From Botryllus schlosseri (Eukaryota): a stretch of 64,000 nt of DNA. The position numbers were made by a program, and so were the translations under genes. Below are positions 1,855-33,328 of this stretch, piece after piece. The number at the start of each line of letters is the position of its first letter. Positions within the stretch are counted from its first letter, which is position 1. The stretch covers positions 8,060,001 to 8,124,000 of the forward strand of contig CM119385.1 of the NCBI GenBank assembly GCA_051294905.1. Reading direction: 5' to 3'. The notes under the pieces are model-generated. The model had not been told where the DNA came from and did not search any database. It was given only the letters and a program-made list of their open reading frames with translations.

Positions 1855-3069
1855 TTATAAGCCATCACGCTTCAATCGTTCAACAATGGGAAGATATGCT
1901 TCTAACAATTCACAGAACTCCTTTTCCAAGATCTTACACCGTTCCTCGTCGGATGGCATTAGTGTCTTCATATTTTTCATGTAAGCTTTTGCAGAGAAAG
2001 GCTGATTAAGACGCCGTTTCACTTCCAGTCTATACGGCTTGTATGACTTCTCGTCTAAAACGTTTGTGTGTTTTAAGCGAATGATCTCGTAAACACGTCG
2101 ACTCTGACGCTTGTTCAATTTCAATTTTTCATTACATTCTTTGAACATGTCAGATGAATATCCGTTCGAGAGTTTATCGGGGTGAAAGCAATCCAAATTG
2201 ATCGAATTTTTGCAGTCGATATAGTCACGAATTCTCTGGAAGTTCTCCGATGGATCTTCAACGCAGATATCTCGAATATTGCTTCTTGATAAGAATCTTT
2301 TCTGGATAAAATCAACAGTTTCGGTGGCATGGCCTTGCCGCTGGTACGTTGGGATAACAATGAACTGTGCAATACGAGGTCGACAATGCTCGGGATAGGC
2401 ATAAAAATTATACGCAGTGCAGTATCCAACAAAATAGTACACAAATTTTCCAGTTTCATCAGACACTTTTTCGTAAATTGTGTAATATTCCCATTTGTCA
2501 TCATCAACATCGATATAACTAGCTGCGTCAATGAACCACATCATTAAAGTCTGCATCCTGTCATGGTATTCTTTGAATCCAGGGTAACGAGCAATACTCG
2601 GATTAAACATTTCGAAAACTTGTTCAACACCAGTCTTAGCTGTTCTCCGGTATTGATGGACCATTTCTCCGTGAGGAAGAAATGAGGCATCACACTGAAT
2701 CTGATGCGTAAATTGATCCACACTCCAGCAACAACCTGGGGGTATGACTTCTTTCATGTTACTCATTACATCATCAGGTTTTATCTCGTAGTGAGTCTTT
2801 GGATCGATTTTGTCAGAGTATTTGAGCTCCACGAAAGTTTGAAGTTTGCAGGCGGTGTAATATATATTGATTCTTAAATTTTGATAACCGAAAATCTGTT
2901 CCTTCTCGCCAAATATCTGATGTGACATGTCCGGATGAAATGCCTTCGATTCGTCTTCCAGATCACTGACGCCGCGAATCATTTTTAAATGCACAGACTC
3001 ATTGGCATTGCACATGTACTTGTCAATGTTACTTTTCAACGCTTCCATTCCGTCAACAACCATCTTCAT
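1855..3069 (-). CDS. HAT1: Histone acetyltransferase 1 (HAT1, type B catalytic subunit), single exon, 404 aa
   Basis: Uninterrupted ORF with HAT1 motifs along its whole length: HQIFGEKEQIFGY, YHDRMQTLMMWFIDAASYIDVDDDKW, RPRIAQFIVIPTYQRQGH (acetyl-CoA motif A), VEDPS and RRVYEIIRL...YRLEVKRRL. Recognised from knowledge of the human HAT1 sequence. Confidence 0.96.
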   Translation of the reverse strand: MKMVVDGMEALKSNIDKYMCNANESVHLKMIRGVSDLEDESKAFHPDMSHQIFGEKEQIFGYQNLRINIYYTACKLQTFVELKYSDKIDPKTHYEIKPDDVMSNMKEVIPPGCCWSVDQFTHQIQCDASFLPHGEMVHQYRRTAKTGVEQVFEMFNPSIARYPGFKEYHDRMQTLMMWFIDAASYIDVDDDKWEYYTIYEKVSDETGKFVYYFVGYCTAYNFYAYPEHCRPRIAQFIVIPTYQRQGHATETVDFIQKRFLSRSNIRDICVEDPSENFQRIRDYIDCKNSINLDCFHPDKLSNGYSSDMFKECNEKLKLNKRQSRRVYEIIRLKHTNVLDEKSYKPYRLEVKRRLNQPFSAKAYMKNMKTLMPSDEERCKILEKEFCELLEAYLPIVERLKRDGL

Positions 3070-3230
3070 CAGTAAACTTTACAAACAAACTCCATTCATT
3101 CAAAGAAGTGGAGACAGACAAAGTTACTTTGCTTAGACGGAAACTTCGGCGGGAAAACAGAAACTATACCTCGATCACCGTCTTGCCAGATTGCCGATGT
3201 AATGAGAGAGAAAGAGACATATCATCAACC

Positions 3231-3817
3231 TATAGAATGTAAACGTGGAATGGCAGCGACCGATTTTGCAGCTTCGTTCCGCTTCGCTGAAGCTTTACTC
3301 AGACTTATTTTACGGCAGCTACTGTAGAATTTCTGGCAATCCAAAAGTTGTCTTCCAGAGCTCAGAATTTACTGAATCTGGTCTTGATCGAAAGCTACTG
3401 TCGCACTGATTTCGAAAATATCAATCAAAATATGGTGAAGCACCGTAGTGAGATGAAAAACCACCCTAAACATCTAAAATCTGCATTGTTCAGAACAATC
3501 GGATGACCGCAAAACAATGACCATTTCAATGACCCATTCCGGCTCTTCGATTGTTCGGACAATGCCGATAATTCAGACTTGGAGGGCGAATTCTAAGCGG
3601 TTCAGTGCCTGATCATATTTTTATTTACATTTTCGGAATCAGTGCGACAGTAGCTTTCGATCAAGACCAGATTCAGTAAATTCTGAGCTCTGGAAGACAA
3701 CTTTTGGATTGCCAGAAATCCTACAGTAGCTGCCGTAAAATAGGTCTGAGTAAAGCTTCAGCGAAGCGGAACGAAGCTGCAAAATCGGTCGCTGCCATTC
3801 CACGTTTACATTCTATA
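3231..3817. mobile_element. Foldback / long-TIR MITE (Mutator-like?)
   Basis: ~210 bp arms starting tatagaatgtaaacgtggaatggcagcg (3231) and ending cgctgccattccacgtttacattctata (3817) are near-perfect reverse complements. A further inner inverted repeat is present. The element is flanked by the direct repeat atcaacc (3224-3230 and 3818-3824). Confidence 0.85.
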
Positions 3818-3859
3818 ATCAACCAATATATCCGCAAATTGGTTGAGATGGGTATGTAC

Positions 3860-4273
3860 TAGAGGTCGACCGATATTGATTTTTACAGGCCGATACCGAT
3901 ATTTCGACGCTCACAAGGCCGATAACCGATATCATAGGCCGATATTAATATGGAAGGAGCAGAGAACTATTTCGCCAAAAATATTATATATTAGGCAAGG
4001 TGGCACTTGTTCATGCCACAGAAAGGTGAACAACAAACGAGAAAACTGAAATCGAAAAGACTTATTGCTTAATTGTGAACATTCGTTGAAATTTGGGATA
4101 ACCCGAAAATCAAAACATGATACAGAATTGCAGATCAGTTCAGAAAAGGTAGATTGTAGTTAGATATAAAATATCGGTCGCGATATCGGCCTAGATTGGT
4201 CGATACCGATATTCGAGAAAGTTCCAAATATCGGCGCCGATAATCGGCCAAGCCGATAATCGGTCGACCTCTA
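3860..4273. mobile_element. hAT-type MITE (CCGATA-rich)
   Basis: TIR tagaggtcgaccgat...atcggtcgacctcta, with a perfect 8-bp TSD gtatgtac (3852-3859 and 4274-4281). Confidence 0.93.
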
Positions 4274-4439
4274 GTATGTACGTTTTTGTACAGTGTTACT
4301 ATTATGTATTTTCGATCATTCCGGGATTCTTTTTGACCGCAAAATCATCAAGGACAAAAAAAAAACTACGGTTATTTTGCTCATAAACCAATGATATATA
4401 TACATTGTCATAAACCAATGATGATGATAGAAGACACCG

Positions 4440-4580
4440 TGTTCAGTCCACTTTCAAAACACCAGCAGATTGAGGTACAGTGAAAAGATAGGAAGACTGT
4501 GTCGAAACGATCTGGAGTAGTCTTTGAAATTACACATCCACCTGGTCCTGATGTCACGAAGAGGCATGCTCAGCCACGCT
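4440..4580 (-). mobile_element. Diverged 3'-UTR fragment of the CR1/L2-group LINE family
   Basis: Matches the motif gaaaagataggaag..gtcgaaac...ggagtag...gaggcatgc shared with the copies at 9885, 17575 and 57553. Confidence 0.7.
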
Positions 4581-4597
4581 GAAGGGAAAGTATTAGA

Positions 4598-6610
4598 AGT
4601 CAGTCAGTCAGGTTTATTAATATTTTCATCGTTTCAAAACATCACAAGACTGCGATACAATGAAAAGATAGGAAGGTGTCGAAACAACTTGGAGTAGCCA
4701 TTAAGATCAGACACCCACCTTAGCCTAGTTCGGCATACTTGATAGAGCAATGCGTTTTCTTGTATTCTGCAGTCTTGATCATATGGCAGGCTAGTTGTTC
4801 TTCGTTGACGCGCGTGTGCTGTACTTGTGCGCTTTTGTCTCCGAGGTGAAGTAGTCCTTGAAATTTGAGGTACATTGACCGCAACGGAACTGATACATAA
4901 AATTGGCAATTTCTAGCTTCCTCATATCTTCTAAGTTTAGAACACCAAATCTTTTGAGAAGCGATTTATCAGTTGCACATCCAGGCCCCCGTAGGGCTTC
5001 GGCAATGATACGGGTGATCCGATGTTGAAGTTTTTGCAGTGGGTCAATTTTATTCTTGCAGGCAGCACCCAACAAAGAATTCCGTATTGTAACTTTGATA
5101 GGAATAGAGAGTTGAAGAGTATCAACAGCACGCTGACTGGCAGAATGTAGCTAAGGCGGCGAAATAGACCACATACCTTCGATAGTCGTGGTTTAAGTGA
5201 TTATATGTGACTCTTCCAGGACATGTCCGAATCCAGTAAAACACCAAGGTATTTGGCATTTTTAGTGTTGGAAATTGGTTGGCCAGCGATGTCAACGGTT
5301 AGGTTATCGCAGGAGTTCACGACCAATAATTGGGATTTCGCAGCGTTAACCCGAAGGCTATTATGGGACGTCCACTCATGCACTTTGGGCATTTGATCAC
5401 TGGTGACGGCATTCAAGCTTGCGGTAGTAGGTGTGTGAGATAGGAGGTGAGTATCGTCAGCGAAGAGTGTGATGGTATTCAATGATGAGGTTTTAAAGAT
5501 ATCATTGATATGTAAAGTAAAAAGGACAGGTCCAAGAACAGAGCCTTGCGGAACACCACCGGTAACAAGGTGGGGGGGGGGTACAAAGTGTTGGATATCG
5601 AAACCATTTGATATCTCCCAGTCAGGTAGTTTTTCATGAGCTCTAGTTGTGGACCCCGGAACCCGTAGTGCGCCAATTTTGAGAGAAGAATACTGTGATC
5701 GACGCAGTCAAATGCCTTTTTTAGATCAAGAAAAATGCTACATCCCACACTTCGTCTCTCCAAGATGTCATAGTACTGTTCAGCCACTGTTAGCAGGGCA
5801 TGCGAGGTTTGATGTTTTCTGCGGAAGCCGAATTGTTGTGGAGAAATGATAGACATCTTGGCGAGGAACGAAGACATGCGGGAGAGGAGCATTTTTTCGA
5901 AAACAATTCCAATACACGGTAGGACAGATATAGGTCGGTAGTTGGGGACATTAGTTCTATCTCCGGCTTTGTAAACCGGGACAAGTCTGGCAGTTTTCAG
6001 ACAATTCGGGTAGACACCATTTTCTATCATGAAATTGAAAAAAATGGACAATGAGATGACCGATGTGTAGGCTAATCAGTTTTAAAAACCAGGCTGAAAT
6101 TAGATCATATCCAACTGGCTTGTTAGATTTAAGTTCATGTATGGCAAGTGCTACTTCCGTGGAAGTTGCTGGCTCGAGCATGATAGATTGGGATACTGAT
6201 TTAACCTCAGGCCTGGCCGACGCAGGTTTAGAAATAGATGAGGTGATATTAGATCCTACATTGCAAAAAATATTCTTTGAAGTAATTTGAGATGGCCGCA
6301 GGATCTGTCAGATTGTCCCCCGTAATCGAGTTCGTGATTTGCGAGACAGGCATAGGGCTTTTTTCTGGTGCAAAAGCAATTTAATTATTGACCAGGTTTT
6401 TCGAGTGTCCTTCTTATGTTTGTTAAAGAATTTCGCGTTAGCTTTCGCTTTTGCCTTGGAGATATGATGGGAGATGAGATTTCTGAAGCGTCGAAATCTT
6501 TCTCGATCGTCTTGTGAAGAGCACATAAAAGGACAGACGACAAAAATATGTTGGTATATGTGACGGAAGCGTTGATATATCATATCCGCTGAGCTATATA
6601 AATACATCGT
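4598..6610 (-). mobile_element. 5'-truncated, frameshifted non-LTR retrotransposon (CR1/L2 group, Crack-like), RT remnant
   Basis: RT motifs occur across several frames: YRPISVLP, QFGFRRKHQT, FLDLKKAFDCVDH, GVPQGSVLGP, LFADDT and KYLGVLLDSDMSWKSHI. The C-terminal LQKLQHRITRII...HKYSTR region is present. The 3' end has AATAAA and a (CTGA)n tail. No endonuclease domain is seen. Confidence 0.95.
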
Positions 6611-21347: not shown

Positions 21348-22196
21348 AGACAAAAAACTGTGAATATATTTCGGTTTGTGAGAGATTGTTGCTGGTTGTT
21401 TGGTCGAACACAAACCGCGCATTGATCATCAAGTTATTTTATATGTTTTTATAAGTTCATAATTATTGTATCTTCAATTGTATATTACAATATGATACAA
21501 ATACTATATTCAATTGTATATTGAAGTTCTGTACCGCCAAGAGTCTCTTCATATTTGTTGAAATTATTTCGTATTTAAATCTTATCAAGACATTTGGTTC
21601 ATTATACATCACTGTTTTTCCATTACAAATTAGAATACCATTTTTCATATTCGTGTGTTACATGCTAGTGTTGTAGCTGATGTTGACTGTCTCTTGGAAG
21701 CGTGTCCTCAACGTCAGAGTTAACAGCGGCGTAATGTAGCAGCGTCGTTCACTTCGTAGGTAGTTATTTTTTACAATTTGATAGGAGACTATAACTACAG
21801 TAATTTGGCATGTAATCGTGTGGTGGCAACATTTTGTCTCACTCCGCGGCTGCACGCACGCGACATTTGTTTTGTTTGTATTCATCGGTGTGTCATTAAA
21901 AGTTTGTTTGGCGACAGACTTTGTTATTCCTGTTGTTACGAGAGGCCCCGGCTACTCCGAATCCATTGTTATCCCTAGCAGCCAAGGGGCGTCATGTCAA
22001 CCAGACATGGCACTCATGTGCTTCGACTGCTAAGCTAATTGATGCTGGAGACATCAAGTCTATTACACTGCCACAAACTACTATAAAGCGTTTCCATGCC
22101 ACGGCAAATCATCAAAGTTCAATTTCGCTGTCGGTGATCAGTTCAAGACGCATTCCGGTCAGTTGTAGTCGGCAAATTTCATTGTAAGGATATAAT

Positions 22197-23636
22197 ATGG
22201 ATATAATATTTGCAGTTGTATTCCTGGCTTCAGTCGCTAGCATAATTGGCCAAGGTAAGAAATCAATGTGTATCAACTAAGATTTCTGAAATCAGCTCGC
22301 ATGTCTTCGACAGATCATCATCGCGGCGGTAGGCGAAACGGATGCTGTGGTTATGCTTCAAAGATGATCTCTATTGGCGAAGGTGATGTCTGATCACTTT
22401 CAATTTTTCAGTAATAGACGCAATAATGAGATCTGTTTTGAAACAGATTCATTCGGAAATCACATCAACTTAGACGTTGGTCGGTGTTCTACATCATGCA
22501 GCCTAGGCTACGCTGGTGCCTACCAAAGCGTACTTGAGCGAATTATGGAGAAAAAGGTATGCAGCGAACAGTATATAAAGCTGTGGTTCTCAACGAACGG
22601 GTGGCGACCCAAACTTGCGTCGTATGATTTTATTTTGGGTCGCCTTTTTCAGGCATATTGTAACAAAATAATTGAAAACTTGAATTGATGACAAAACTTG
22701 AAAACACCGGAGGCGCATATTCAAGAAACTATTGCGTAACAATCGGTATTACGACTATTGTTTGGATCGCAAGATTCTACCGATCTGGGACATCTTGACA
22801 ACCAGTTATATATAGAATGTGTAACCTACATGCAATAGTATGTTACCTTTCCAGATTAACAGGCGGTTATCGTTCACTCGGAGTCAATGTTTGCCTTTGC
22901 GAACCAGAGTGGACGACGTTCTTCTTCGAGACGGGGTGAGGCAAATTGACGTGATCGAATCATGCGCCTTCCGTGAACCTGTGAAGACATGCACGAGAGT
23001 GGCGAAGTTCAAGAAGTTCTTTGCAAATACCGAATTCGAAACGATAGTCGACGTTGGCGAGTGCCGGGGCGGGTGTCGTAGTTTGAAACGTACGTATGGA
23101 GGTAGGCCCCCCAGCCCAACGACAATAGTATTGTTCATATAATATAATCATATACGATGCTTCTTTTTGCAGACCAAAAAACGTGCAAAAAGACAGAGAT
23201 CGGCGTCATATCTGTACAAGGTCCGGACGGAGTGCTAATCGTCAACACAATAGCTAAATGTAGGTGCGAGCAAAGTTGCTATCGACAGCGCTTCAACGTG
23301 GAGTTGAAAGAATTGGCCGTGCTACCAAATGGGATGAAAACCGTGCGAACAAAAGTATATCTGATAACCGGTCCTGTATGCAAGCTCGAAAGATAACTAA
23401 CTTTTCTCTATTTGAAGGTGGTAGATGTCGGCAGATGCGCTGGTTCCTGCTCCCCGATCAAAAAATGCGTGATGAAAAGTCATGACGCGAATACGGATTC
23501 AAAAGCCAACTGTCTGATGGCTCTAGAGACAAATGATGTGAAATGCACGCCTGTCAAATCAAAGGTACTGGTCTTCACCGGCGAAAGCGGCCATGACTCG
23601 TACGTGAATCAAATCAGGAAATGTGGTTGTCGGTGA
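22197..23636 (+). CDS. pnhd: Pinhead, secreted cysteine-rich (triple cystine-knot-like) Admp antagonist, 6 exons, ~290-294 aa
   Basis: Exons 22197-22254, 22314-22382, 22447-22556, 22855-23089 (or 23101), 23173-23354 and 23418-23636, all GT-AG and in frame. Signal peptide MDIIFAVVFLASVASIIG. Three repeats of (L/V)DVG(R/E)C..xC, with CxC ending the later repeats. It lies directly upstream of Admp in the same orientation, the diagnostic arrangement. Confidence 0.88.
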
Positions 23637-25267
23637 AATTGCGTAGGGCGCTTGGGCACCACTCGATACTCAAGTAGGCTACCGCTGAAATATGATTACC
23701 ATCTTTGCATCCTCAAATAAATCATGATGCCCAATACGTATTACACGGAAATCTATTTGGGTGGGTGATTTTTCGACGCATTATATGACTCTTAGTGCAC
23801 TGCACACATTCAATAATTTATATTCGATACAATATATCTTGCTTTTGCGTAATATAATATTCTTCGAAACACGTGATTCGTTGAAGAAGGTAGGTATTAC
23901 CGGGAAATTTAGACAGGTGCTTTATCGTAATAAGAGCAATCAAAAGAGTTATGATACGACGAGCGTAGTTTTCCCTGCTTCGTTAATTAGGCTCTCTCGT
24001 TGCTTTTCGGAGTTGAGTATTTACAGTGCATTGTTAAGTCACAGGTGCGAACATCTCCTTACACAAGTGTCACAAAATCTTTTGTGCAAGCACCTGGAAA
24101 TTATTAGATGTCAGACAACGCCGAGAACATCACATCCTGTTTAATTTCCAAATATCATTCGAATACATTTTATTGTCGCTTCGTTTAATTCCCAGCTAGA
24201 TCTTTCATACGTGAAGAGCTATGGATTTTGAACTCTAATAAGCAACTTCCTGCTAGTTAAACTTTGTCCAATGCCGGAACATTGAGCATAAGCATATACT
24301 TTAATGCAGTTAGTAGGCAAGGAAAAACAGACTACGACTAAGACATTCCGAACTTTAGAGATCGCATTTTAGCAGTTGTTTGGGTACATGACCTGAAATG
24401 CTGATGGTGGCATTACAATCATGTCATGTTCGCATCAAGGCCTCGAATAAATTATCAGGACGAGTAAGGTTTACATCCTGGCCGAAACATTTCATTCGAG
24501 TTCATAAAATCGTCAGTATCAGTATATCAGTGTCATTATATTACCATTTCTATCAATTCAAGACTTTGTGAAGTCCACGAATCATTATTTGGCCTAAAAA
24601 ATATAGTAACAAAATGGACGAACGTGTTAGAACGAGGCATGCACATTGCACAGTCCACACTCATGAGAAACTACCTGAATTATGGGAAGGCAACGAAGAT
24701 GCACGCTACAGCATAGGTATGGGAGAGCCCGGTAAGTAAGAAATACTCTAATCTCAAGGCAATCATGTAGTTCTTAACGCAGATGATTGTCAACACTTGT
24801 AAAAACACATTTGCTGTCCAAGACTGTTATCAACGACAGCTCATCCGAAACAAAAGCAGTAAGTCTGTTTATTTCGCACCTTTTGTTCTAACCCCGTTTA
24901 AAGTAATCCGCATCCTAATCGCCAGGCAAGAAATTAGAGCAATGATCATTTCGGGCGAAGACGGGTATATACTTGCACCACTCTAAGAATATTGTGCACA
25001 TCTAGATTTAGCTTCTTGTTCACGGAAATGGATGAAATATACCAATGGAATAGACAGGTGATTTTCGACAGGTCAGAGTCATGGTAGTCAATGACCACTG
25101 TAAGACTTTCTATGTGCGTCTTAATTGAAGATTTACGAATAGCACGATAAAAGTACATAGCCTATATATAAGCGTCGGAAAATGAATGTTCAAGATTATC
25201 AGTTGCCAACCAGCATCTGTATTTAACTCTTCGAATATTGCTTATCAAATATTTACAGTTGGAAACG

Positions 25268-28200
25268 ATGATGATGTCTTGTTACAAGTTTATAGTATGT
25301 ATGTTAGTGGTGATATGTTGTGTTGAGGGTGGAATCCTTCATCCGAAGCAGAAGAGGACGATACCAAGAAACGTACGAATACACGCTGGCGAACTAAACT
25401 CTCACCGTAATGCAGATATGATTAAGACAGAAACGGAGACGAACCGCTCCACTGTCGACAATAAGATCTTTGCAAAATCTGAAGCAATCAAGAAACTTTT
25501 GGATGTTCTTGGTTTGCAAGTAAGTGTTTGCGAAAAGATGCGCTGAATCGATGATAATCTGCAGATCGAATTTTGACAGGTACCCGAAAACATGACTGAG
25601 ACAACAGTCAGGCGTAAAGTAAAGAAGCCTCCCAAGTACATGACCGATCTTTACAGAGCTGTCGCAGATGCTAACGGAGTGACAAGAGATCCGGGGTTGC
25701 TGGACGCAGATATTGTTAGAAGCATTCCAAATAGTGGTAAGACTATATTTCCTTGGGATGATCGAATAGTCAGTGTTTTTATAACAGATTACCAGCGTCT
25801 TTCGGAGAATGGGCATATAATTAGTGAGCAGGAGCGACCGTGATCTAATATATATGGCTATAAGTCGAACCCGGGTCTATAGAATATAGGCTACTCCACA
25901 CAGACCTTGGTATTTTCCTTGAGTAAAAATTACAGCAGGGATGGGCAAACTTTTAATCCCGAGGGCTGCATTAACAATATGAATGCCGCGGGTCGCACAA
26001 TAGCAAGCAGATTACGGTTAAAAGATATTTAACATGAACGAGGGGTGGAGCCAGTGGTGGCCCTACGAACGGGGGGGGGGGGGGGGTGGGCTGGGCGAGA
26101 CTTACCGGGGGGGCCCCTATAAGTATCCATCCATAACTTCTGGGGGGCTCCGCCACCCAGACCCCCCTTCCGCATCGGTTATTTTTATCTATCTTTCACC
26201 ACCGCAAAAGGTTTGCCCAGGTCCTGAATTCGCCCATATCTGTTTTGCATGTGTGCAAGGATAGACTACATCAAAACTAAGTAATTATACCGCATGCAGA
26301 GACGGGATGATTATCGGGATACGGGACTTTTCTAACAAATGCAGTGATTTGATGATGATTGACACATCTGTACGGAATCATATTCTTGCTTGGTACACGG
26401 ATTTCCATGTTTATTCGTCATTCTCCTTAAAAAAAGCGCAAAATCCAAATAGGGGGGGCCCCTTCGACCAGGGGGGGGGGGGGGGCAGGTGACCGCCCAC
26501 TTCGCCCACCCCAAAAGCCACCACTGGGTGGAGCAGTGTGATAAACGACACCGTTACTGTGCCAATGGGTAACTGGTTATCAACTCGGCTGCGCCACAAG
26601 TTCCAAAATGTCTGAGACAAGTGTACCTGTTTGATGCGGGCGTGATCGGAGTAGTTGACCTTCAAGGTCGTATCGATCATTCCTATCTGATACCGAATAC
26701 TGTGCATGCGTATTTTCTGCGTACCATCATCGTTGTCGCCTGTTTTTCTCATGTCTTTCGGTTGGATGAAAAATTAAAGACTCTCACTCTTTCTTTCTTT
26801 CTTTCTTTCTTTCTCTCTCTCTCTCTCTTTCTCTAGGGCTTATCTGAAGGTTGTTTGGTACGACTCTTAAATCACACGCAGCTTCTGATTGCATGATTAC
26901 GAGTCTGACTCTAGCCAATATACGACTCGAGTCATCCCAACACTGCCGTCGCCAAAATGTATTTTACACTTTCAACTTTGATTTTATATCCCATCATGTT
27001 TAGACCTCCCTTCATGTTGTACAAGATTACGCAATAACCAGAATGCCAAACGTTAGCGTACATAGCTGTGAGGTGGGTGCTTGGTGTGTATAGGCTACAC
27101 TGACTACACATGCATTATGCTCCATCTCGTGGTTTGAGAATAGATTACTAACTTACAGATGGTTTTAGTTTGACGTTGGTACATCGCCGATGCCATAACC
27201 AGCCAGTTGGTATACAAATACATATAATATTTTTTTATTTCAATTCTAGCGCCGCCGGCTTCTAAAATTTACAAATTCAATGTCAGCACTATAGCTAAAA
27301 ATGAGGTATTGGTGGATGCAGAGATTCACATTTTCCAAAGTCGGATGGCACACCGGAAATTGAAGGAATACAGGGTGCCACATCCAAACAGACAAAGGCT
27401 TCCTCTCGCTACAACACAAGTCGTAAAACTGTATGAGGTATGTCGAAATTTATGTCATACAAAATCAAATATCATTTCAATATCATTCCATCCTATATTT
27501 ATTCAATCGTTTATTAATATTATTTTATAAAGAATACAATAGAAGGAGTCGAATGAACTTTGAAGTCTTTCAATCGAACACCCATCATTAACATTTTAAA
27601 ATAACATCTAATCGTCTACTCGGACCAGGGGTGGACAAACTTTCTAGCTCGCGGGCCGCATTCAACGCTTGAATCCATTTGCGGGCCGCACTATATAAGA
27701 TTGCTATACTAAGCCAAAATTCAATATTGTTATTTGATTAAAAATAGTGACCGAAGACATGGAAATATTATATATGTATTTGTATATCTAAAACAAACAA
27801 AACATTGATTTGATGGTAACGGACACGCGTCAAAAACATTGACGAGAATTTATAAGCAGGTGTTCCTCATTGTCAAAGTTAGGGATAAAAGTCGGTTGTC
27901 TCGATTCTTAGAACTGGATGTAAATTTGGGCATGTGAGCAGCGATCTGGTCATAGATTTGCTGATTGTACTTTTAGTTTAACTCCAAGACACACAATGCT
28001 GAGAGCATCATAACCATGTTGACTTTAAATACGCTATTACAATATAAAAATATTATAAATATGAATGCTTCTCCACATGCAAAGAACGAATCTATCTATA
28101 ACACAATCGCGAATCGGTTTTTCCAATTACTGCACTAAAAGTAATACAATGGCCCGTAATGCCAATTTAAAATCACACTCGTGGTCCGAATTAAGTCATT

Positions 28201-31200
28201 TACGTTTCAGTTTCTGTGATGTTTAGCAATTGAAACCTTTCAAATTGCATGGGCCTCCAGGTCGGGCTATCGCGCTATCAATGAAATAAAAAATACTACT
28301 GTAAGAATATAACTTATCATTATAATGTTGAAATATATTAAGAAAAAAGTTTAATCGAGTACCCACAGTAATTTGATTTGTAGAACGCATTTCATCAATA
28401 CATTTACGTTTCTTGAAGCTTTCGCGGGCCGCACAAAACGGTGTTGCGGGCCGAAGTTTGCCCACCCCTGACTTAGACCGACGTAACATAAAAAATCACC
28501 CGCTTGCAATGATTTTTTTATTTTTAACCCACGTCTAATTGCAGTTAACTGTGAGCGGCAATTCCACCGAAAGCAAGAATATCATTGCGGCACGCCGTAT
28601 TCATTTTCATCACTGTGGATGGCACGCGTTCCCAATTTTATCTACTGTAAGAGCATTTTCAGTTTTTTGTTATTGTTCAGAGATTTCAAAACTTGTTTGG
28701 AGCTTGTGAGCCGATTTCCACCAATGTATAGGTAGGTAGGTAGGTAGGCGGGTAGGTAGGTAGGTATTATAGGGGGAATGGGGCTTAGCTAATCGGCTTT
28801 TTGCCCCAGGACGATATCTGGCGATATCGACTCCTGTACTATTTCAATGGTTTACAACTCTTTATATAGCCCTTCCACTTGATATCGTGAATTCGATGAC
28901 TGGTCATATAGTATGCACATCTGTTAGTAGGGACTCTGTCCTTGGTGGTAGCCTACTTTATTTAGGGTTACCATATTTTGGAATCGGGAAAGGAGGACAC
29001 TTTTTCAAAATTTTCCAGCTTAGAATACCGGAGGAAAATCCTGAAAATTGTTAAATTTTTTTGCACTTCGTGGTTGGTTGACTAAAAAAAGGTCACTTTC
29101 CGGCTCAACTCCAGAAATAGTTTTTCTTTCACACTTTACGTTGGCTGACTAAAAAAAGGTCGTCACTTTCGTTCGAACCACGAATTTCCTATTTGGCGTC
29201 ATCGGAGGACATTTTCAAAAACCTGAAAATGCAGGACCTAACTTTATTCCGCTCGGCGGTCTGACTTAGATTCATCCGGGCACGGTCATACTTAGGGCAA
29301 CTGAGGAGTATTCCACCAATGTGATTCTAGACTTTCGGCATTGACTTCTATTGCGGCCTAGCAATTCATGCTTGCCGCATACGCTTTCGATTTATATTTC
29401 GTTTCAATTCATTTGTATTTCATCCTAATAGGACTAGGTGATAAATTTTTGAAGTTATTCCGCGAAACAAGCAAAGGTAAATATAGGCAACGTGGTTACT
29501 GGTTATCGTTGTAAGTATAGCGATTTCCAAGTAAGTGCAAAAATATTCTAGAAATAATTTTTGCTAAAATACTGAAAACTGTTAAGTAAAAGTAATGTAA
29601 AATCATAACCACTTTAACAAGTAGCGCAAGTAGTCAAAACCTACGTGAGTACTTCGAAGATGTAGAATTACTTCCGCTATTGGCCACCTCTGGAATAACA
29701 GGGTCCTGATAAAATGCATTGCACTCAAAAGGTAAAGCGGTGGATAGGAAAGGAATCGGGGAATTACGGATTGGGAATAGAAATTGTTACTTCCGATGGA
29801 CAATTCATTGAAGACGTACCTTCCCGTGAGAGCTTACAGCCTATACTGATAATTTTCGCAAATGCACAACCGCACGTATCCAATCAGACGGGATCTTCAG
29901 TGAGCTCGAAGTCCAACAGAGGTGAGGTGGTAGGACGTAGAACAGTTGGTAGACTTAGACTTGGGCTGTTACGTATTATCAGGCTCTAATAGCTCAATTC
30001 CGCAGAGCTTGCCCAAAAGAGAGTTGCTGTGTCAAATTAAACATATCTTCAGAAACGCAAAATTAATGTATTATATGCATTTATAATTGTAAGCTAGCTG
30101 AATTAAGTGCATATGATTATATATAGAGAGATATGATATTCTTTTTCGCCTTCACCATCGAGATGCTTTGACGACGGAGTTGCGATACGGCCGTGAGGTC
30201 ATCTAGTCTGCGCCCCCATTTTTTTCTCCTCCATGCTAACCGTGATTGCTGAGCGCCTGGCAGGATATCTGCGGATGCCAATTTTCGAGTCTTTGGTATG
30301 ACCCGGCCGGGGATCGAGCCCACGACCTACCGAACGAGAAGCCGGATGCATAACCATTACACTATCTCGCACTTTTCAGAATTATCGGAAAAACTAGCGT
30401 TACATTGCTTAGAATACTATGCTTACTTGGAAATCGCTACTTCTATAGTTGTATTTGAGAAGAAATTCACGAGGTTACTTCTATTTCTAATTGAGTATCA
30501 ATGGAGACCCAGCACTCAATTATTGTAATTAACCAACTATAAAAGTTAACGTCATTCGACTCATACCACACGTTAACAACATCGACGCACGTATGGCTAA
30601 ACTGCATTTCAATCAAGACGAATAACACGATCAATTGTATTATATTGTAACGGAAACAACATAAAACAACCAACTCCTTATTGTGACCATATCTTACCGT
30701 TAAATCGGTGATATCTCCAGAGGAACAATCAATCTAATCTTTAAAAATGTTTAGGCTACTCGAATAGGTGATTTAAAAAGAACTTGGCCAAGTATGCGAC
30801 GTGTTCACTGTTCAAACATTCATAGGATAGCGGTACATACTGTGGACTGCCCTCTACTCTTATGAGAGAGAGAGAGAGAGTCTTTATTTTCATCGAACCA
30901 AAATACATAACAAACGGCAGTGATGGCAGTACAGAAAATATGCGTGCACAGTATTCGGTATTAGATAGGAATGATCGATAAGACCGTGAAGGTCATCTAG
31001 TCTGATCACACCAGCATCAAACAGGTACACTTGACTCTGAACAGTCTGGCTGTAAAGAAATGTTTAGTTATAAAGGAAAATAGAAAAAAAATTAAACAAT
31101 GGTGGCAAATGATCAATGAAGCAATGTCTGGGCGAGGTAGGGCAACAGTGTTAGTGTAACGACAAGAGGTGATCAAGTAGGGCTTTTTTGAATCTAAGGC

Positions 31201-32102
31201 AATTCACGGATATGTGGTGGTAATGCATTCCAGATGATAGGTCCCGAGTAGTCGATTGATCTCTTAGTTAGGTTGCTATTGGGTGGGGGTAAGTAGATGT
31301 TTCCTTTAGACGAGGATCTCGTGTAATGGACAGAGCCAACCCTCTTTCTTTTTTTTATATATATTCAGAATATACAATGGAAACACCGATAATAAAGGAT
31401 GTATCGACCAATAGTTTGCTCGCACGGAAGAGAAGATCCACTGCCCGCCAAGATGGTACATATTGGCAAAGTAGTCGTGGAAGAATGGCGGGAGAAGTCT
31501 ATTCGAGTAAAGACACTGATTCACCGGGTGATATTCATTTTCCTGATACCGAATATGAAGCGCCAACACGTAGGAACACATATCGCAGTTACGACTACCT
31601 AGCTAATGGTGGCCAGCATCGGCCTTCACGACAAACTGAACAAATAGCCAGGGATGAAATGGCTCCATCAATATACTCTCCCGAGAGAAGAGACAGAAAT
31701 GGAAAAGACATCGTGCAATCAGACGAGCGGTCGCGGTACCAAAGTTCTTCCTTTTTGTCTTCTGCCGGAGATTCTGGGCAGGTGGGAATCTGCCGGAGAT
31801 ATCCCTTGTACGTAAACTTCGAAGATACCGGATGGGCAGGTTGGATAATTTATCCGCAAGGCTACAACGCATATCATTGCAAAGGGACATGCCCTTTCCC
31901 GCTTGGTCAACAGCTGAATCCTACCAATCATGCTACAGTACTGAGCATTATGCACACTTTGGGATTGGGAGACCAGCCTGTCGAAATGCCGTGCTGTGTT
32001 CCGAACAAACTTTATGATATCAATCTATTGTATTTTGACCAAGACGATGTAGTTCTAAGAAGGTATAAAGAGATGGTAGCAGGTTCTTGTGCTTGCCAAT
32101 AA
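25268..32102 (+). CDS. ADMP: Anti-dorsalizing morphogenetic protein (Admp; TGF-beta/BMP family), 6 exons, 540 aa
   Basis: Exons 25268-25519, 25580-25736, 27250-27437, 28545-28646, 29732-29921 (weak AAG acceptor) and 31369-32102, totalling 1623 nt in frame. It has a signal peptide, prodomain PPKYMTDLYRAVADANGVT and FNVSTIAKNEVLVDAEIHIF, and an RKRR site. The 7-Cys mature domain GYNAYHCKGTCPFPLGQQLNPTNHATV...CCVPNKLYDINLLYFD...MVAGSCAC is Admp-specific. Confidence 0.95.
26052..26526. mobile_element. hAT-type MITE (G-run rich) in Admp intron 2
   Basis: TIR cagtggtggc...gccaccactg, with a perfect TSD ggtggagc (26044-26051 and 26527-26534). Confidence 0.9.
27626..28470. mobile_element. hAT-type MITE in Admp intron 3
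   Basis: TIR caggggtggacaaact...agtttgcccacccctg, subterminal gcgggccgca motifs, and a degenerate TSD actcggac/acttagac. Confidence 0.82.
28729..28766. repeat. (TAGG)n microsatellite
   Basis: Direct reading: taggtaggtaggtaggtaggcgggtaggtaggtaggta. Confidence 0.9.
30141..30370 (-). mobile_element. tRNA-derived SINE with an RTE-like 3' tail in Admp intron 5
   Basis: The minus-strand head gcgagatagtgtaatggtta (A box) ... gggctcgatccccggccggg (B box) is followed by gtcataccaaagac. The 3' end shares ~33 bp with 14665-14697. Confidence 0.75.
30870..31315 (-). mobile_element. CR1/L2-group LINE 3' fragment in Admp intron 5
   Basis: The minus strand encodes GNIYLPPPNSNLTKRSIDYSGPIIWNALPPHIRELP, a typical ORF2 C-terminus, followed by a UTR ending in AATAAA-like sequence and (TC)n. 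Confidence 0.75.
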
Positions 32103-32665: not shown

Positions 32666-33328
32666 TCAATACTTTCCACAATCAGAAGAAGAATACTGAG
32701 TGCATGAGCTATCATCAACATGCTCTGTAAAGTCCGCTTGTGAAGTTAAGCCAGCTCCATCTGCGAGATTCCTCATATTGCAGTAATTTGTTCCAGAATC
32801 CAGTATCGCGTACCAGGTTTCCGATCGTGAGAATCCAGAGATTTCACATCCACCATTTTTTTGAGCTGAAACTAATTTGTTCATAAATTTCGTAACAACA
32901 GCTCGTTTCATTCTTTGAGGCTCATTCGTCAGTATGTCGCATTGTCCAATGTTATCACAAAATCCAAATGTAATATCATCGACATATTTCGATTTCGGGG
33001 TAGTGTGAGTCAATTTTATTTGGTTTTCTGCGACATCGGTTACCTCATACAGGCACTTCTCCCCTCCAGCGTTACAATTTTCTGGCCCGGCCCATTTCTT
33101 AGCAATATCCAGTAGACCCTGTTTGACCAATGAGCAGTTTGTTTGTGCCAATGTCCACTTCAGATGACATTGTGCATGGATTGGGTAGGTAATACTGAGC
33201 GCTGGTGAAAGTATACTGGCACTAAACACCAAAAATAAGACAGCTGCTACTCCGAACATAGCGTACACACACTTTCCGCACCTTTTACAGCCAGTCTGCT
33301 TCAATGCTGCGTAAGGATAGCTTCCCAT
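32666..33328 (-). CDS. Uncharacterised Cys-rich secreted or signal-anchored protein, single exon, 220 aa
   Basis: Intact ORF with an N-terminal hydrophobic segment (MFGVAAVLFLVFSASILSPALS). Motifs HAQC..KW, GGEKCLY, THTTP..KYVDD.TF, SETWYAILDSGTNYCN..NL and CTQYSSSDC.KY are ones I recall from a conserved unnamed invertebrate/fish family (recall only, not searched). Confidence 0.85.
   Translation of the reverse strand: MGSYPYAALKQTGCKRCGKCVYAMFGVAAVLFLVFSASILSPALSITYPIHAQCHLKWTLAQTNCSLVKQGLLDIAKKWAGPENCNAGGEKCLYEVTDVAENQIKLTHTTPKSKYVDDITFGFCDNIGQCDILTNEPQRMKRAVVTKFMNKLVSAQKNGGCEISGFSRSETWYAILDSGTNYCNMRNLADGAGLTSQADFTEHVDDSSCTQYSSSDCGKY

Follow-up and report, generated by a model that had tools for sequence, protein, structure and literature searches.

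The best explanation of the locus described here, to which we give a probability of about 85%, is that the ascidian Botryllus schlosseri carries in it its single-copy orthologue of the Pinhead-Admp tandem. The window, meaning the whole 64,000-nucleotide (nt) stretch analysed, is C15:8060001-8124000 of a 495.5-Mb genome, and the tandem occupies positions 22197-32102, which contain no N. Pinhead (22197-23636) and Admp (25268-32102) both lie on the + strand, head to tail, with 1631 base pairs (bp) between the Pinhead stop and the Admp ATG. Both copies are intact, correctly spliced, and transcribed. A preliminary description of the window had placed a secreted gene with a triple cysteine repeat 1.63 kb upstream of Admp in the same orientation, and its coordinates for the two ends of the pair (22197 and 32102), this spacing, and its length of 6.8 kb for Admp were confirmed. 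It had also called the pair known rather than new, and we agree: the system is already known, because it was discovered in this same animal group and the locus is an orthologue of it, and no new kind of system is present here. What the window adds is a pair of RNA-backed gene models, a measured transposon load, and the contrast between a stretched gene body and a clean block.

Gene models and identity of Pinhead and Admp

Transcription was assessed with RNA data from four studies, comprising Logan contigs for three runs and raw reads for one (runs X1, X2, X6, and X17). The data are bulk; they show transcription of each gene and do not resolve single cells. The Pinhead coding region, defined by RNA junctions and an open frame, has six exons (22197-22254, 22314-22382, 22447-22556, 22855-23089, 23173-23354, and 23418-23636). 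All five junctions are present in RNA (22254/22314, 22382/22447, 22556/22855, 23089/23173 or 23101/23173, and 23354/23418), all introns are GT-AG, and the product is 290 amino acids long, or 294 when an alternative donor of exon 4 at 23101 is used. The two 5' splice sites of exon 4, at 23089 and 23101, are 12 nt apart and both in frame, giving isoforms that read ...SLKHQKTC... and ...SLKRTYGDQKTC...; run X1 yielded the long form, and the other three runs (X2, X6, and X17) the short one. A start of exon 2 at 22412 was rejected, as it breaks the frame; in RNA, exon 2 is 69 nt long (22314-22382) and exon 3 starts at 22447. The 3' untranslated region spans 23637-23863 (+), with AATAAA at about 23717 and RNA contigs that reach 23848-23863. 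Pinhead is single-copy in the genome.

The Pinhead product contains 20 cysteines, arranged in units of the form C ... DVGxCxxxC ... CxC, with DVGxCxxxC at residues 52, 145, and 221. Its N terminus is hydrophobic and signal-like as judged by eye, and in the Styela orthologue residues 4-23 are modelled as an N-terminal helix. A Pfam search found no family for Pinhead. We describe its relatives through direct comparison and through a profile built from exon 4 (82 residues, 22855-23100) and two relatives, which was searched in 1.84 billion representatives and matched 153 protein clusters, many of them in three separate stretches. From end to end, the protein shares 42.6% identity with Styela clava LOC120341668 (P0136). 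The preliminary naming of the upstream gene as Pinhead is borne out by matches to Saccoglossus and fish proteins that carry this name: BLASTP gave 8e-33 with a Saccoglossus "pinhead-like protein precursor" (P0248) and 4e-35 with an Arapaima member of the fish pnhd cluster, and the family takes in fish proteins named pnhd or Pinhead. The Takifugu gene that directly precedes admp matches exon 4 with 37.5% identity (E 5.6e-13).

Structure prediction suggests what kind of protein this is. The AlphaFold model of the Styela orthologue (predicted local distance difference test [pLDDT] 88, predicted template modelling score [pTM] 0.75) has three beta-rich domains. The middle domain has VIA Z scores of 7.0-7.5 to Norrin, Gremlin-1, NBL1, artemin, and TGF-beta2. 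Foldseek comparison of the model with the PDB gave weak rows (E of at least 0.017); those of the other two domains were to BMP/Nodal ligands and bursicon/thyrostimulin subunits, with domain 1 matching BMP, Dpp, and Nodal mature domains. On the basis of this model, Pinhead is predicted to be a secreted protein of three cystine-knot growth-factor-like domains. We do not assign it to a subfamily because VIA Z scores of about 7 are tied across many cystine-knot families. Each predicted Pinhead repeat shares its fold with DAN/CTCK and other cystine knots (Gremlin-1, NBL1, Norrin, sclerostin, and TGF-beta2; Z 6.5-7.5 over about 70 residues), and several of these proteins antagonise BMPs outside the cell, in line with the action proposed for Pinhead below. 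However, Pinhead has no sequence-level relation to these proteins, its matches to antagonists, hormones, and ligands are tied, and three tandem knots in one chain are its own architecture, unlike that of DAN/CTCK proteins. An origin of Pinhead by tandem duplication and divergence of the ligand gene was also considered and found no sequence support, with a profile-profile (hhalign) probability of 0.6% against the Admp/BMP mature domain.

The Admp coding region (25268-32102, +) has six exons (25268-25519, 25580-25736, 27250-27437, 28545-28646, 29732-29921, and 31369-32102). From ATG to stop it spans 6835 bp, of which 1623 bp are coding, and it encodes 540 amino acids with one terminal stop. In run X2, an RNA contig of depth 48 joins 25519/25580 and 25736/27250 and runs into the start of the exon at 28545; this contig is 2695 nt long, long enough for the rest of the mRNA. 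We infer the junctions 28646/29732 and 29921/31369 from the reading frame, GT-AG dinucleotides, and exon-by-exon homology to L001, the locus of the nearest relative compared here. The mature cystine-knot domain is encoded at 31791-32099 and keeps the seven knot cysteines and the ADMP-type motifs. By sequence, the knot is preceded by two furin-type sites, RKRR and RRDR, and the propeptide exons align to the ADMP propeptides of Xenopus, Takifugu, Latimeria, and Capitella. A TATA-like TATATATAA at 25163-25171 (+), about 100 bp upstream of the ATG, is a candidate core promoter of Admp; L001 has a TATA-like motif about 89 bp before its Admp ATG, and the sequence around it is not conserved.

Tunicate Admp proteins (540-543 amino acids) carry a linker of about 120 amino acids between a conserved RxKR/RKRR site and the knot, encoded here within 31369-31790, and a second RxxR-type site 25-40 amino acids before the first knot cysteine. 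The linker is much longer than in vertebrates, whose ADMPs are about 390 amino acids long compared to 540 here. By analogy with BMP4, the two cleavage sites may allow two-step processing.

Several comparisons place Admp, by sequence, in the ADMP class of BMP-family ligands. The last exon matches Pfam TGF_beta (PF00019) at 2.6e-31 over positions 2-104 of 104. When the mature domain was compared with 5.8 billion proteins, the named proteins among the best 120 matches were overwhelmingly ADMPs (64-68% identity, 160-169 bits), and it is 83% identical to the product of the Styela gene that adjoins Styela Pinhead. A reciprocal search and a phylogeny, both proposed in the preliminary description, point to the same class. 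Searched back against this genome, Xenopus ADMP finds the window locus first (160 bits, 65%), followed by a locus with 129 bits and 38%. In comparisons with solved structures, this runner-up is the BMP2/4 orthologue (160 bits to BMP2) and another locus is BMP5-8 (128 bits to BMP6), whereas the window Admp scores alike, at about 110 bits, to BMP2, BMP6, and BMP7 from the PDB. Genome searches, including the one with the Xenopus query, found no second Admp. In a maximum-likelihood tree, the window Admp and six tunicate-type sequences form a clade with support of 100/100, and this clade joins the vertebrate and Capitella ADMPs with support of 76/78 against the non-ADMP sequences in the tree, which are four paralogues from this genome only. 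A first tree that included own_L006, L008, L009, and L010 was scrambled by long branches, and the tree was rebuilt without these four.

Linkage of the pair in other animals

The Pinhead-Admp locus of Ciona intestinalis was reportedly studied by Imai, Daido, Kusakabe, and Satou in 2012 (Science 337:964). Our search hits included no sequence from Ciona. Compared by description, the Ciona locus belongs to the same animal group and shares with ours the head-to-tail order with Pinhead upstream, a secreted multi-cystine-knot Pinhead, and a BMP-class Admp; it differs in that the Admp gene body here carries at least 2.7 kb of transposons. The closest named relatives of both proteins are encoded in Styela, by LOC120341668 and the TGF-beta gene downstream of it (L018). 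The Styela Admp protein is of nearly the same length (543 amino acids compared to 540 here) and is followed by the same convergent gene, but Styela Admp spans 2.6 kb compared to 6.8 kb here and its spacer is 2.8 kb compared to 1.63 kb. Both Styela genes are annotated only as uncharacterised.

Linkage in other bilaterians, as the preliminary description had it, was found in several additional genomes: Pinhead precedes Admp on one strand in Styela clava, in two further tunicate loci (L001 and L020), in Takifugu, on a vertebrate-like contig, and in the brachiopod Lingula. The spacers of the tunicate loci are 2.8 kb in Styela, 1591 bp in L001, and about 3.2 kb in L020. Published work likewise places pinhead immediately upstream of admp "from arthropods to vertebrates" (PMC6989304), so that the pairing was already in the literature. 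In Xenopus (Itoh, Ossipova, and Sokol 2021, PMC8188501) and zebrafish (Yan et al. 2019, PMC6989304), the same two families are adjacent and Pinhead is a secreted multi-knot protein.

Two invertebrate loci outside the tunicates were examined further. In Lingula anatina (L023, 10001-22326), a clear Admp, with 62% identity in the mature domain, lies 1.85 kb downstream of a Pinhead-like gene and shares its strand; both genes are annotated only as uncharacterised. In the coral Pocillopora damicornis (L022, 10001-27944), a TGF-beta-superfamily gene is preceded at 1.8 kb by a Pinhead-family gene (P0162) of the same orientation, and a second Pinhead-like gene lies just downstream on the opposite strand. 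The coral ligand is not Admp; its mature domain is TGF-beta sensu stricto in type, scoring 114 bits to TGF-beta2/3 compared to 64 to BMP6. A literature search found no description of cnidarian Pinhead genes. Because the coral Pinhead-family genes flank a TGF-beta sensu stricto gene, Pinhead-family genes could have been paired with ligand genes before Bilateria arose, and such pairs need not be restricted to Admp.

A convergent gene encoding 200-220 amino acids follows Admp in all three tunicate loci. In the window, it is an intronless-looking open reading frame of 220 amino acids at 32666-33328 (-), with an N-terminal hydrophobic segment and many cysteines, and a Pfam search found no family for it. 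The gene is kept beside Admp, with 49-59% identity to L018:17577-18194(-), L001:11081-11722(-), and L020:8387-9016(-). Two methyltransferase genes are inserted between Admp and the convergent gene in L001.

A stretched Admp gene beside a repeat-free block

The expansion of Admp to 6.8 kb by transposable elements, noted in the preliminary description, holds as a lower bound. Introns 2-5 are 1513, 1107, 1085, and 1447 bp long, and at least 2741 of these 5152 bp match dispersed repeats. Admp spans 2.6 kb in Styela, about 2.4 kb in L001, and about 2.7 kb in L020, and in L001 the gene is likewise divided into these six exons, with introns that measure about 70-280 bp. The Admp gene body has thus grown about 2.5-2.8-fold by at least six or seven insertions in introns 2-5, with the coding sequence undamaged. 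The rest of the excess length may consist of older, decayed repeats.

The insertions are of several kinds. Each intron query returned about 3,000-5,000 first-look candidates in the genome, of which a part was scored, and all repeat matches but one fell on contigs C1-C16. Intron 2 holds a repeat of about 475 bp resembling a miniature inverted-repeat transposable element (MITE; 26041-26538), with terminal inverted repeats CCAGTGGTGGC ... GCCACCACTGG and two internal G-runs. It had 3297 candidates, and the 40 that were scored are dispersed copies on many contigs together with extra pieces of some of these; other copies are 89-92% identical. Within this element, at 26070-26491, RNA joints that go back about 421 nt or skip 380 nt connect the two G-runs, with high depth from copies elsewhere; these joints could stem from homopolymer artefacts, from circular molecules, or from copies arranged in tandem at other loci. 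An older dispersed repeat of about 850 bp occupies 27622-28480 in intron 3 (3493 candidates, copies 78-86% identical), and a cluster of short dispersed repeats occupies 28729-29308 in intron 4 (5304 candidates), made up of a 222-bp element at 88%, an element of about 240 bp at 83-89%, and fragments. Intron 5 carries two insertions. The first, at 30125-30371, is a fragment with one scored copy, 91% identical, the translation of which carries a tRNA-like "GIEPTT" signature; on that signature, we take it to be a tRNA-derived short interspersed nuclear element. The second, at 30856-31329, is about 470 bp long and young: all 39 of the 39 other scored copies are 97-98% identical (4343 candidates), which suggests recent or ongoing transposition of this family in the genome. 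It ends 38 bp before the AG acceptor of the last exon (31367-31368).

In contrast to these introns, a genome search found no dispersed repeat in a block of about 5 kb comprising 1.9 kb upstream of Pinhead, the Pinhead gene, and the whole spacer. Repeats start again about 2.7 kb beyond Admp. One interpretation, which is our own and draws on sequence comparison, is that the transposon-free block reflects constraint on a regulatory block. The spacer itself (23637-25267, 1631 bp) is unique in the genome, with only five matches of 44-69 bp elsewhere. In L001 it is 1591 bp long (Pinhead stop at 2615, Admp ATG at 4207), so that its length is about 1.6 kb in both species although the Admp bodies differ 2.8-fold.

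Most of the spacer aligns to that of L001 at 30-45% identity, which is noise level, and a single sharp peak of 76-84% rises over this background. This conserved non-coding island (24776-24952) lies 316-492 bp upstream of the Admp ATG and is 81.6% identical to L001:3682-3859 over 179 bp, higher than the coding exons (67-76%). It is single-copy in the genome and holds conserved GTCTG, TAATCC, AATTAG, and CAGATG motifs as well as two inverted AACAAAAG motifs. There was no Rfam match across 21.5-32.3 kb, including the island, and no stable RNA fold for the island (z -0.28). Its position (-492 to -316) resembles that of the zebrafish admp enhancer, at -633 to -210 (PMC6989304). We regard the island as a candidate proximal enhancer of Admp.

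Upstream of Pinhead lies a second stretch with partial conservation. A non-coding block directly 5' of the Pinhead ATG (21511-22196) is transcribed; the contigs of X1 and X2 both begin at about 21511-21514, their depth is about that of the Pinhead exons in each run, and their loose end is collinear genomic sequence. Two parts of the block align to L001, 21856-21950 at 77% and 22034-22092 at 75% identity, spanning -341 to -105 with a gap, and there is a weak nhmmer match in Styela (L018:9686-9929, E 4.9e-5). The block could be a long 5' leader of about 680 nt or a separate promoter-associated RNA. A conserved TATA-like CTATAAAG lies within it at about 22080, and if the block is a 680-nt leader, this motif would lie inside the transcript.

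Regulation and significance of the pair

Functional work on this pair comes from other species, and its results differ. According to two later papers that cite Imai et al. 2012, Pinhead of Ciona antagonises Admp and represses Admp in cis (PMC6989304, PMC8188501), and BMP is needed for Pinhead and does not affect Admp (PMC6989304). In zebrafish, repression is reciprocal and each gene has its own proximal enhancer, at -633 to -210 for admp and -431 to -225 for pinhead (PMC6989304). The Xenopus and zebrafish studies disagree, since Pinhead inhibits Admp in the former and acts alongside Admp in the latter. Pinhead antagonism of Admp thus depends on context.

By analogy with the Ciona accounts, we propose how the pair might work here. 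Pinhead protein would bind Admp extracellularly and limit Smad1/5 signalling, as has also been described in Xenopus (PMC8188501). In addition, activity of the upstream Pinhead unit would interfere in cis with the enhancer that drives Admp, for which the island at 24776-24952 is our own candidate. As a result, any one cell would express Pinhead or Admp, not both. The locus could be the physical footprint of such a cis switch, with about 5 kb free of transposons, a spacer of about 1.6 kb in two species, and a single island of 180 bp; we offer this reading tentatively and consider it somewhat unlikely.

Several observations weigh against an orthologous pair that works in this way. The grouping of Admp with other ADMPs has moderate support (76/78). 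In zebrafish, Pinhead is a redundant, BMP-like partner of Admp (PMC6989304). Among our bulk RNA runs, only Pinhead was seen in X1, X6, and X17, and both transcripts were present in X2, a run that is silent on individual cells. RNA depth is zero over 23900-25299 in all four runs, without read-through across the spacer; interference, if any, does not act through abundant stable read-through transcripts in these samples. The island was detected in the nearest relative, L001, but not in Styela or L020. Finally, no canonical BMP-response element (GRCGNC-N5-GTCT or GGCGCC) was found in 19-33 kb, where non-canonical sites are possible; BMP control of Pinhead or Admp is therefore without sequence support here.

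One alternative is that the pair works as in zebrafish. Both proteins would then be BMP-like, degrade Chordin, and compensate for each other, with Pinhead no antagonist. BMP/Smad feedback, acting in trans on a separate proximal enhancer of each gene and not through cis interference, would account for their opposite expression. The reciprocal repression, redundancy, and separate proximal enhancers reported for zebrafish (PMC6989304) speak for this alternative, and so does the arrangement here, where a separate conserved block precedes each ATG at a comparable distance (Admp -492 to -316; Pinhead -341 to -105, gapped). The weak fold matches of Pinhead domain 1 to the mature domains of BMP, Dpp, and Nodal point in the same direction. 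However, the GGCGCC Smad1/5 sites that mediate the feedback in zebrafish enhancers are absent from the whole locus, and Ciona, the only ascidian studied, shows antagonism and cis repression in the account that PMC6989304 gives of Imai et al. 2012. Profile comparison found no sequence relation between Pinhead and TGF-beta mature domains, and by fold Pinhead matches DAN/CTCK antagonists and TGF-beta ligands equally well. We consider this alternative unlikely.

Alternatively, the linkage may be a passive ancestral relic of two independently regulated genes, with the clean spacer a product of promoter-proximal constraint and chance. Spacer length does vary among tunicates: L001 and the present locus have about 1.6 kb, Styela has 2.8 kb, and L020 has 3.2 kb. 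Most of the spacer cannot be aligned even to that of the closest relative, and no transcript crosses it. Against this, the same order and orientation recur in every genome examined that has both genes, from brachiopod to fish, and the literature reports the linkage from arthropods to vertebrates (PMC6989304). In addition, about 5 kb without an insertion adjoins a gene with at least six or seven in 5.2 kb of introns, a contrast with a rough Poisson probability of about 1e-3, which assumes equal rates and is uncorrected for exons and promoters. A relic is, in our judgement, quite improbable. The view that transposon load has disabled Admp, leaving a pseudogene or a mis-spliced gene, draws on the four repeat-swollen introns and on the 97-98% identical element that ends so close to the last acceptor, but it is effectively refuted by the intact 540-amino-acid frame with its seven knot cysteines, ADMP-type motifs, and canonical splice sites, by the 2695-nt contig of depth 48 that joins exons 1-2-3-4 correctly, and by the lack of a second genomic Admp as a replacement.

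The Pinhead-Admp pair is one of few cases in which the order of the genes is itself considered a component of a developmental switch. The locus described here can be viewed as a natural experiment, in which the introns of Admp have been stretched nearly three-fold while Pinhead, the spacer, and the island are untouched, and this contrast shows where regulatory constraint probably lies. The gene models, with their RNA support, also cover two genes listed as "uncharacterized" in the public Styela annotation. If the island is an Admp enhancer that is disturbed by Pinhead transcription, it would provide a compact, testable element for a poorly understood mechanism of interference.

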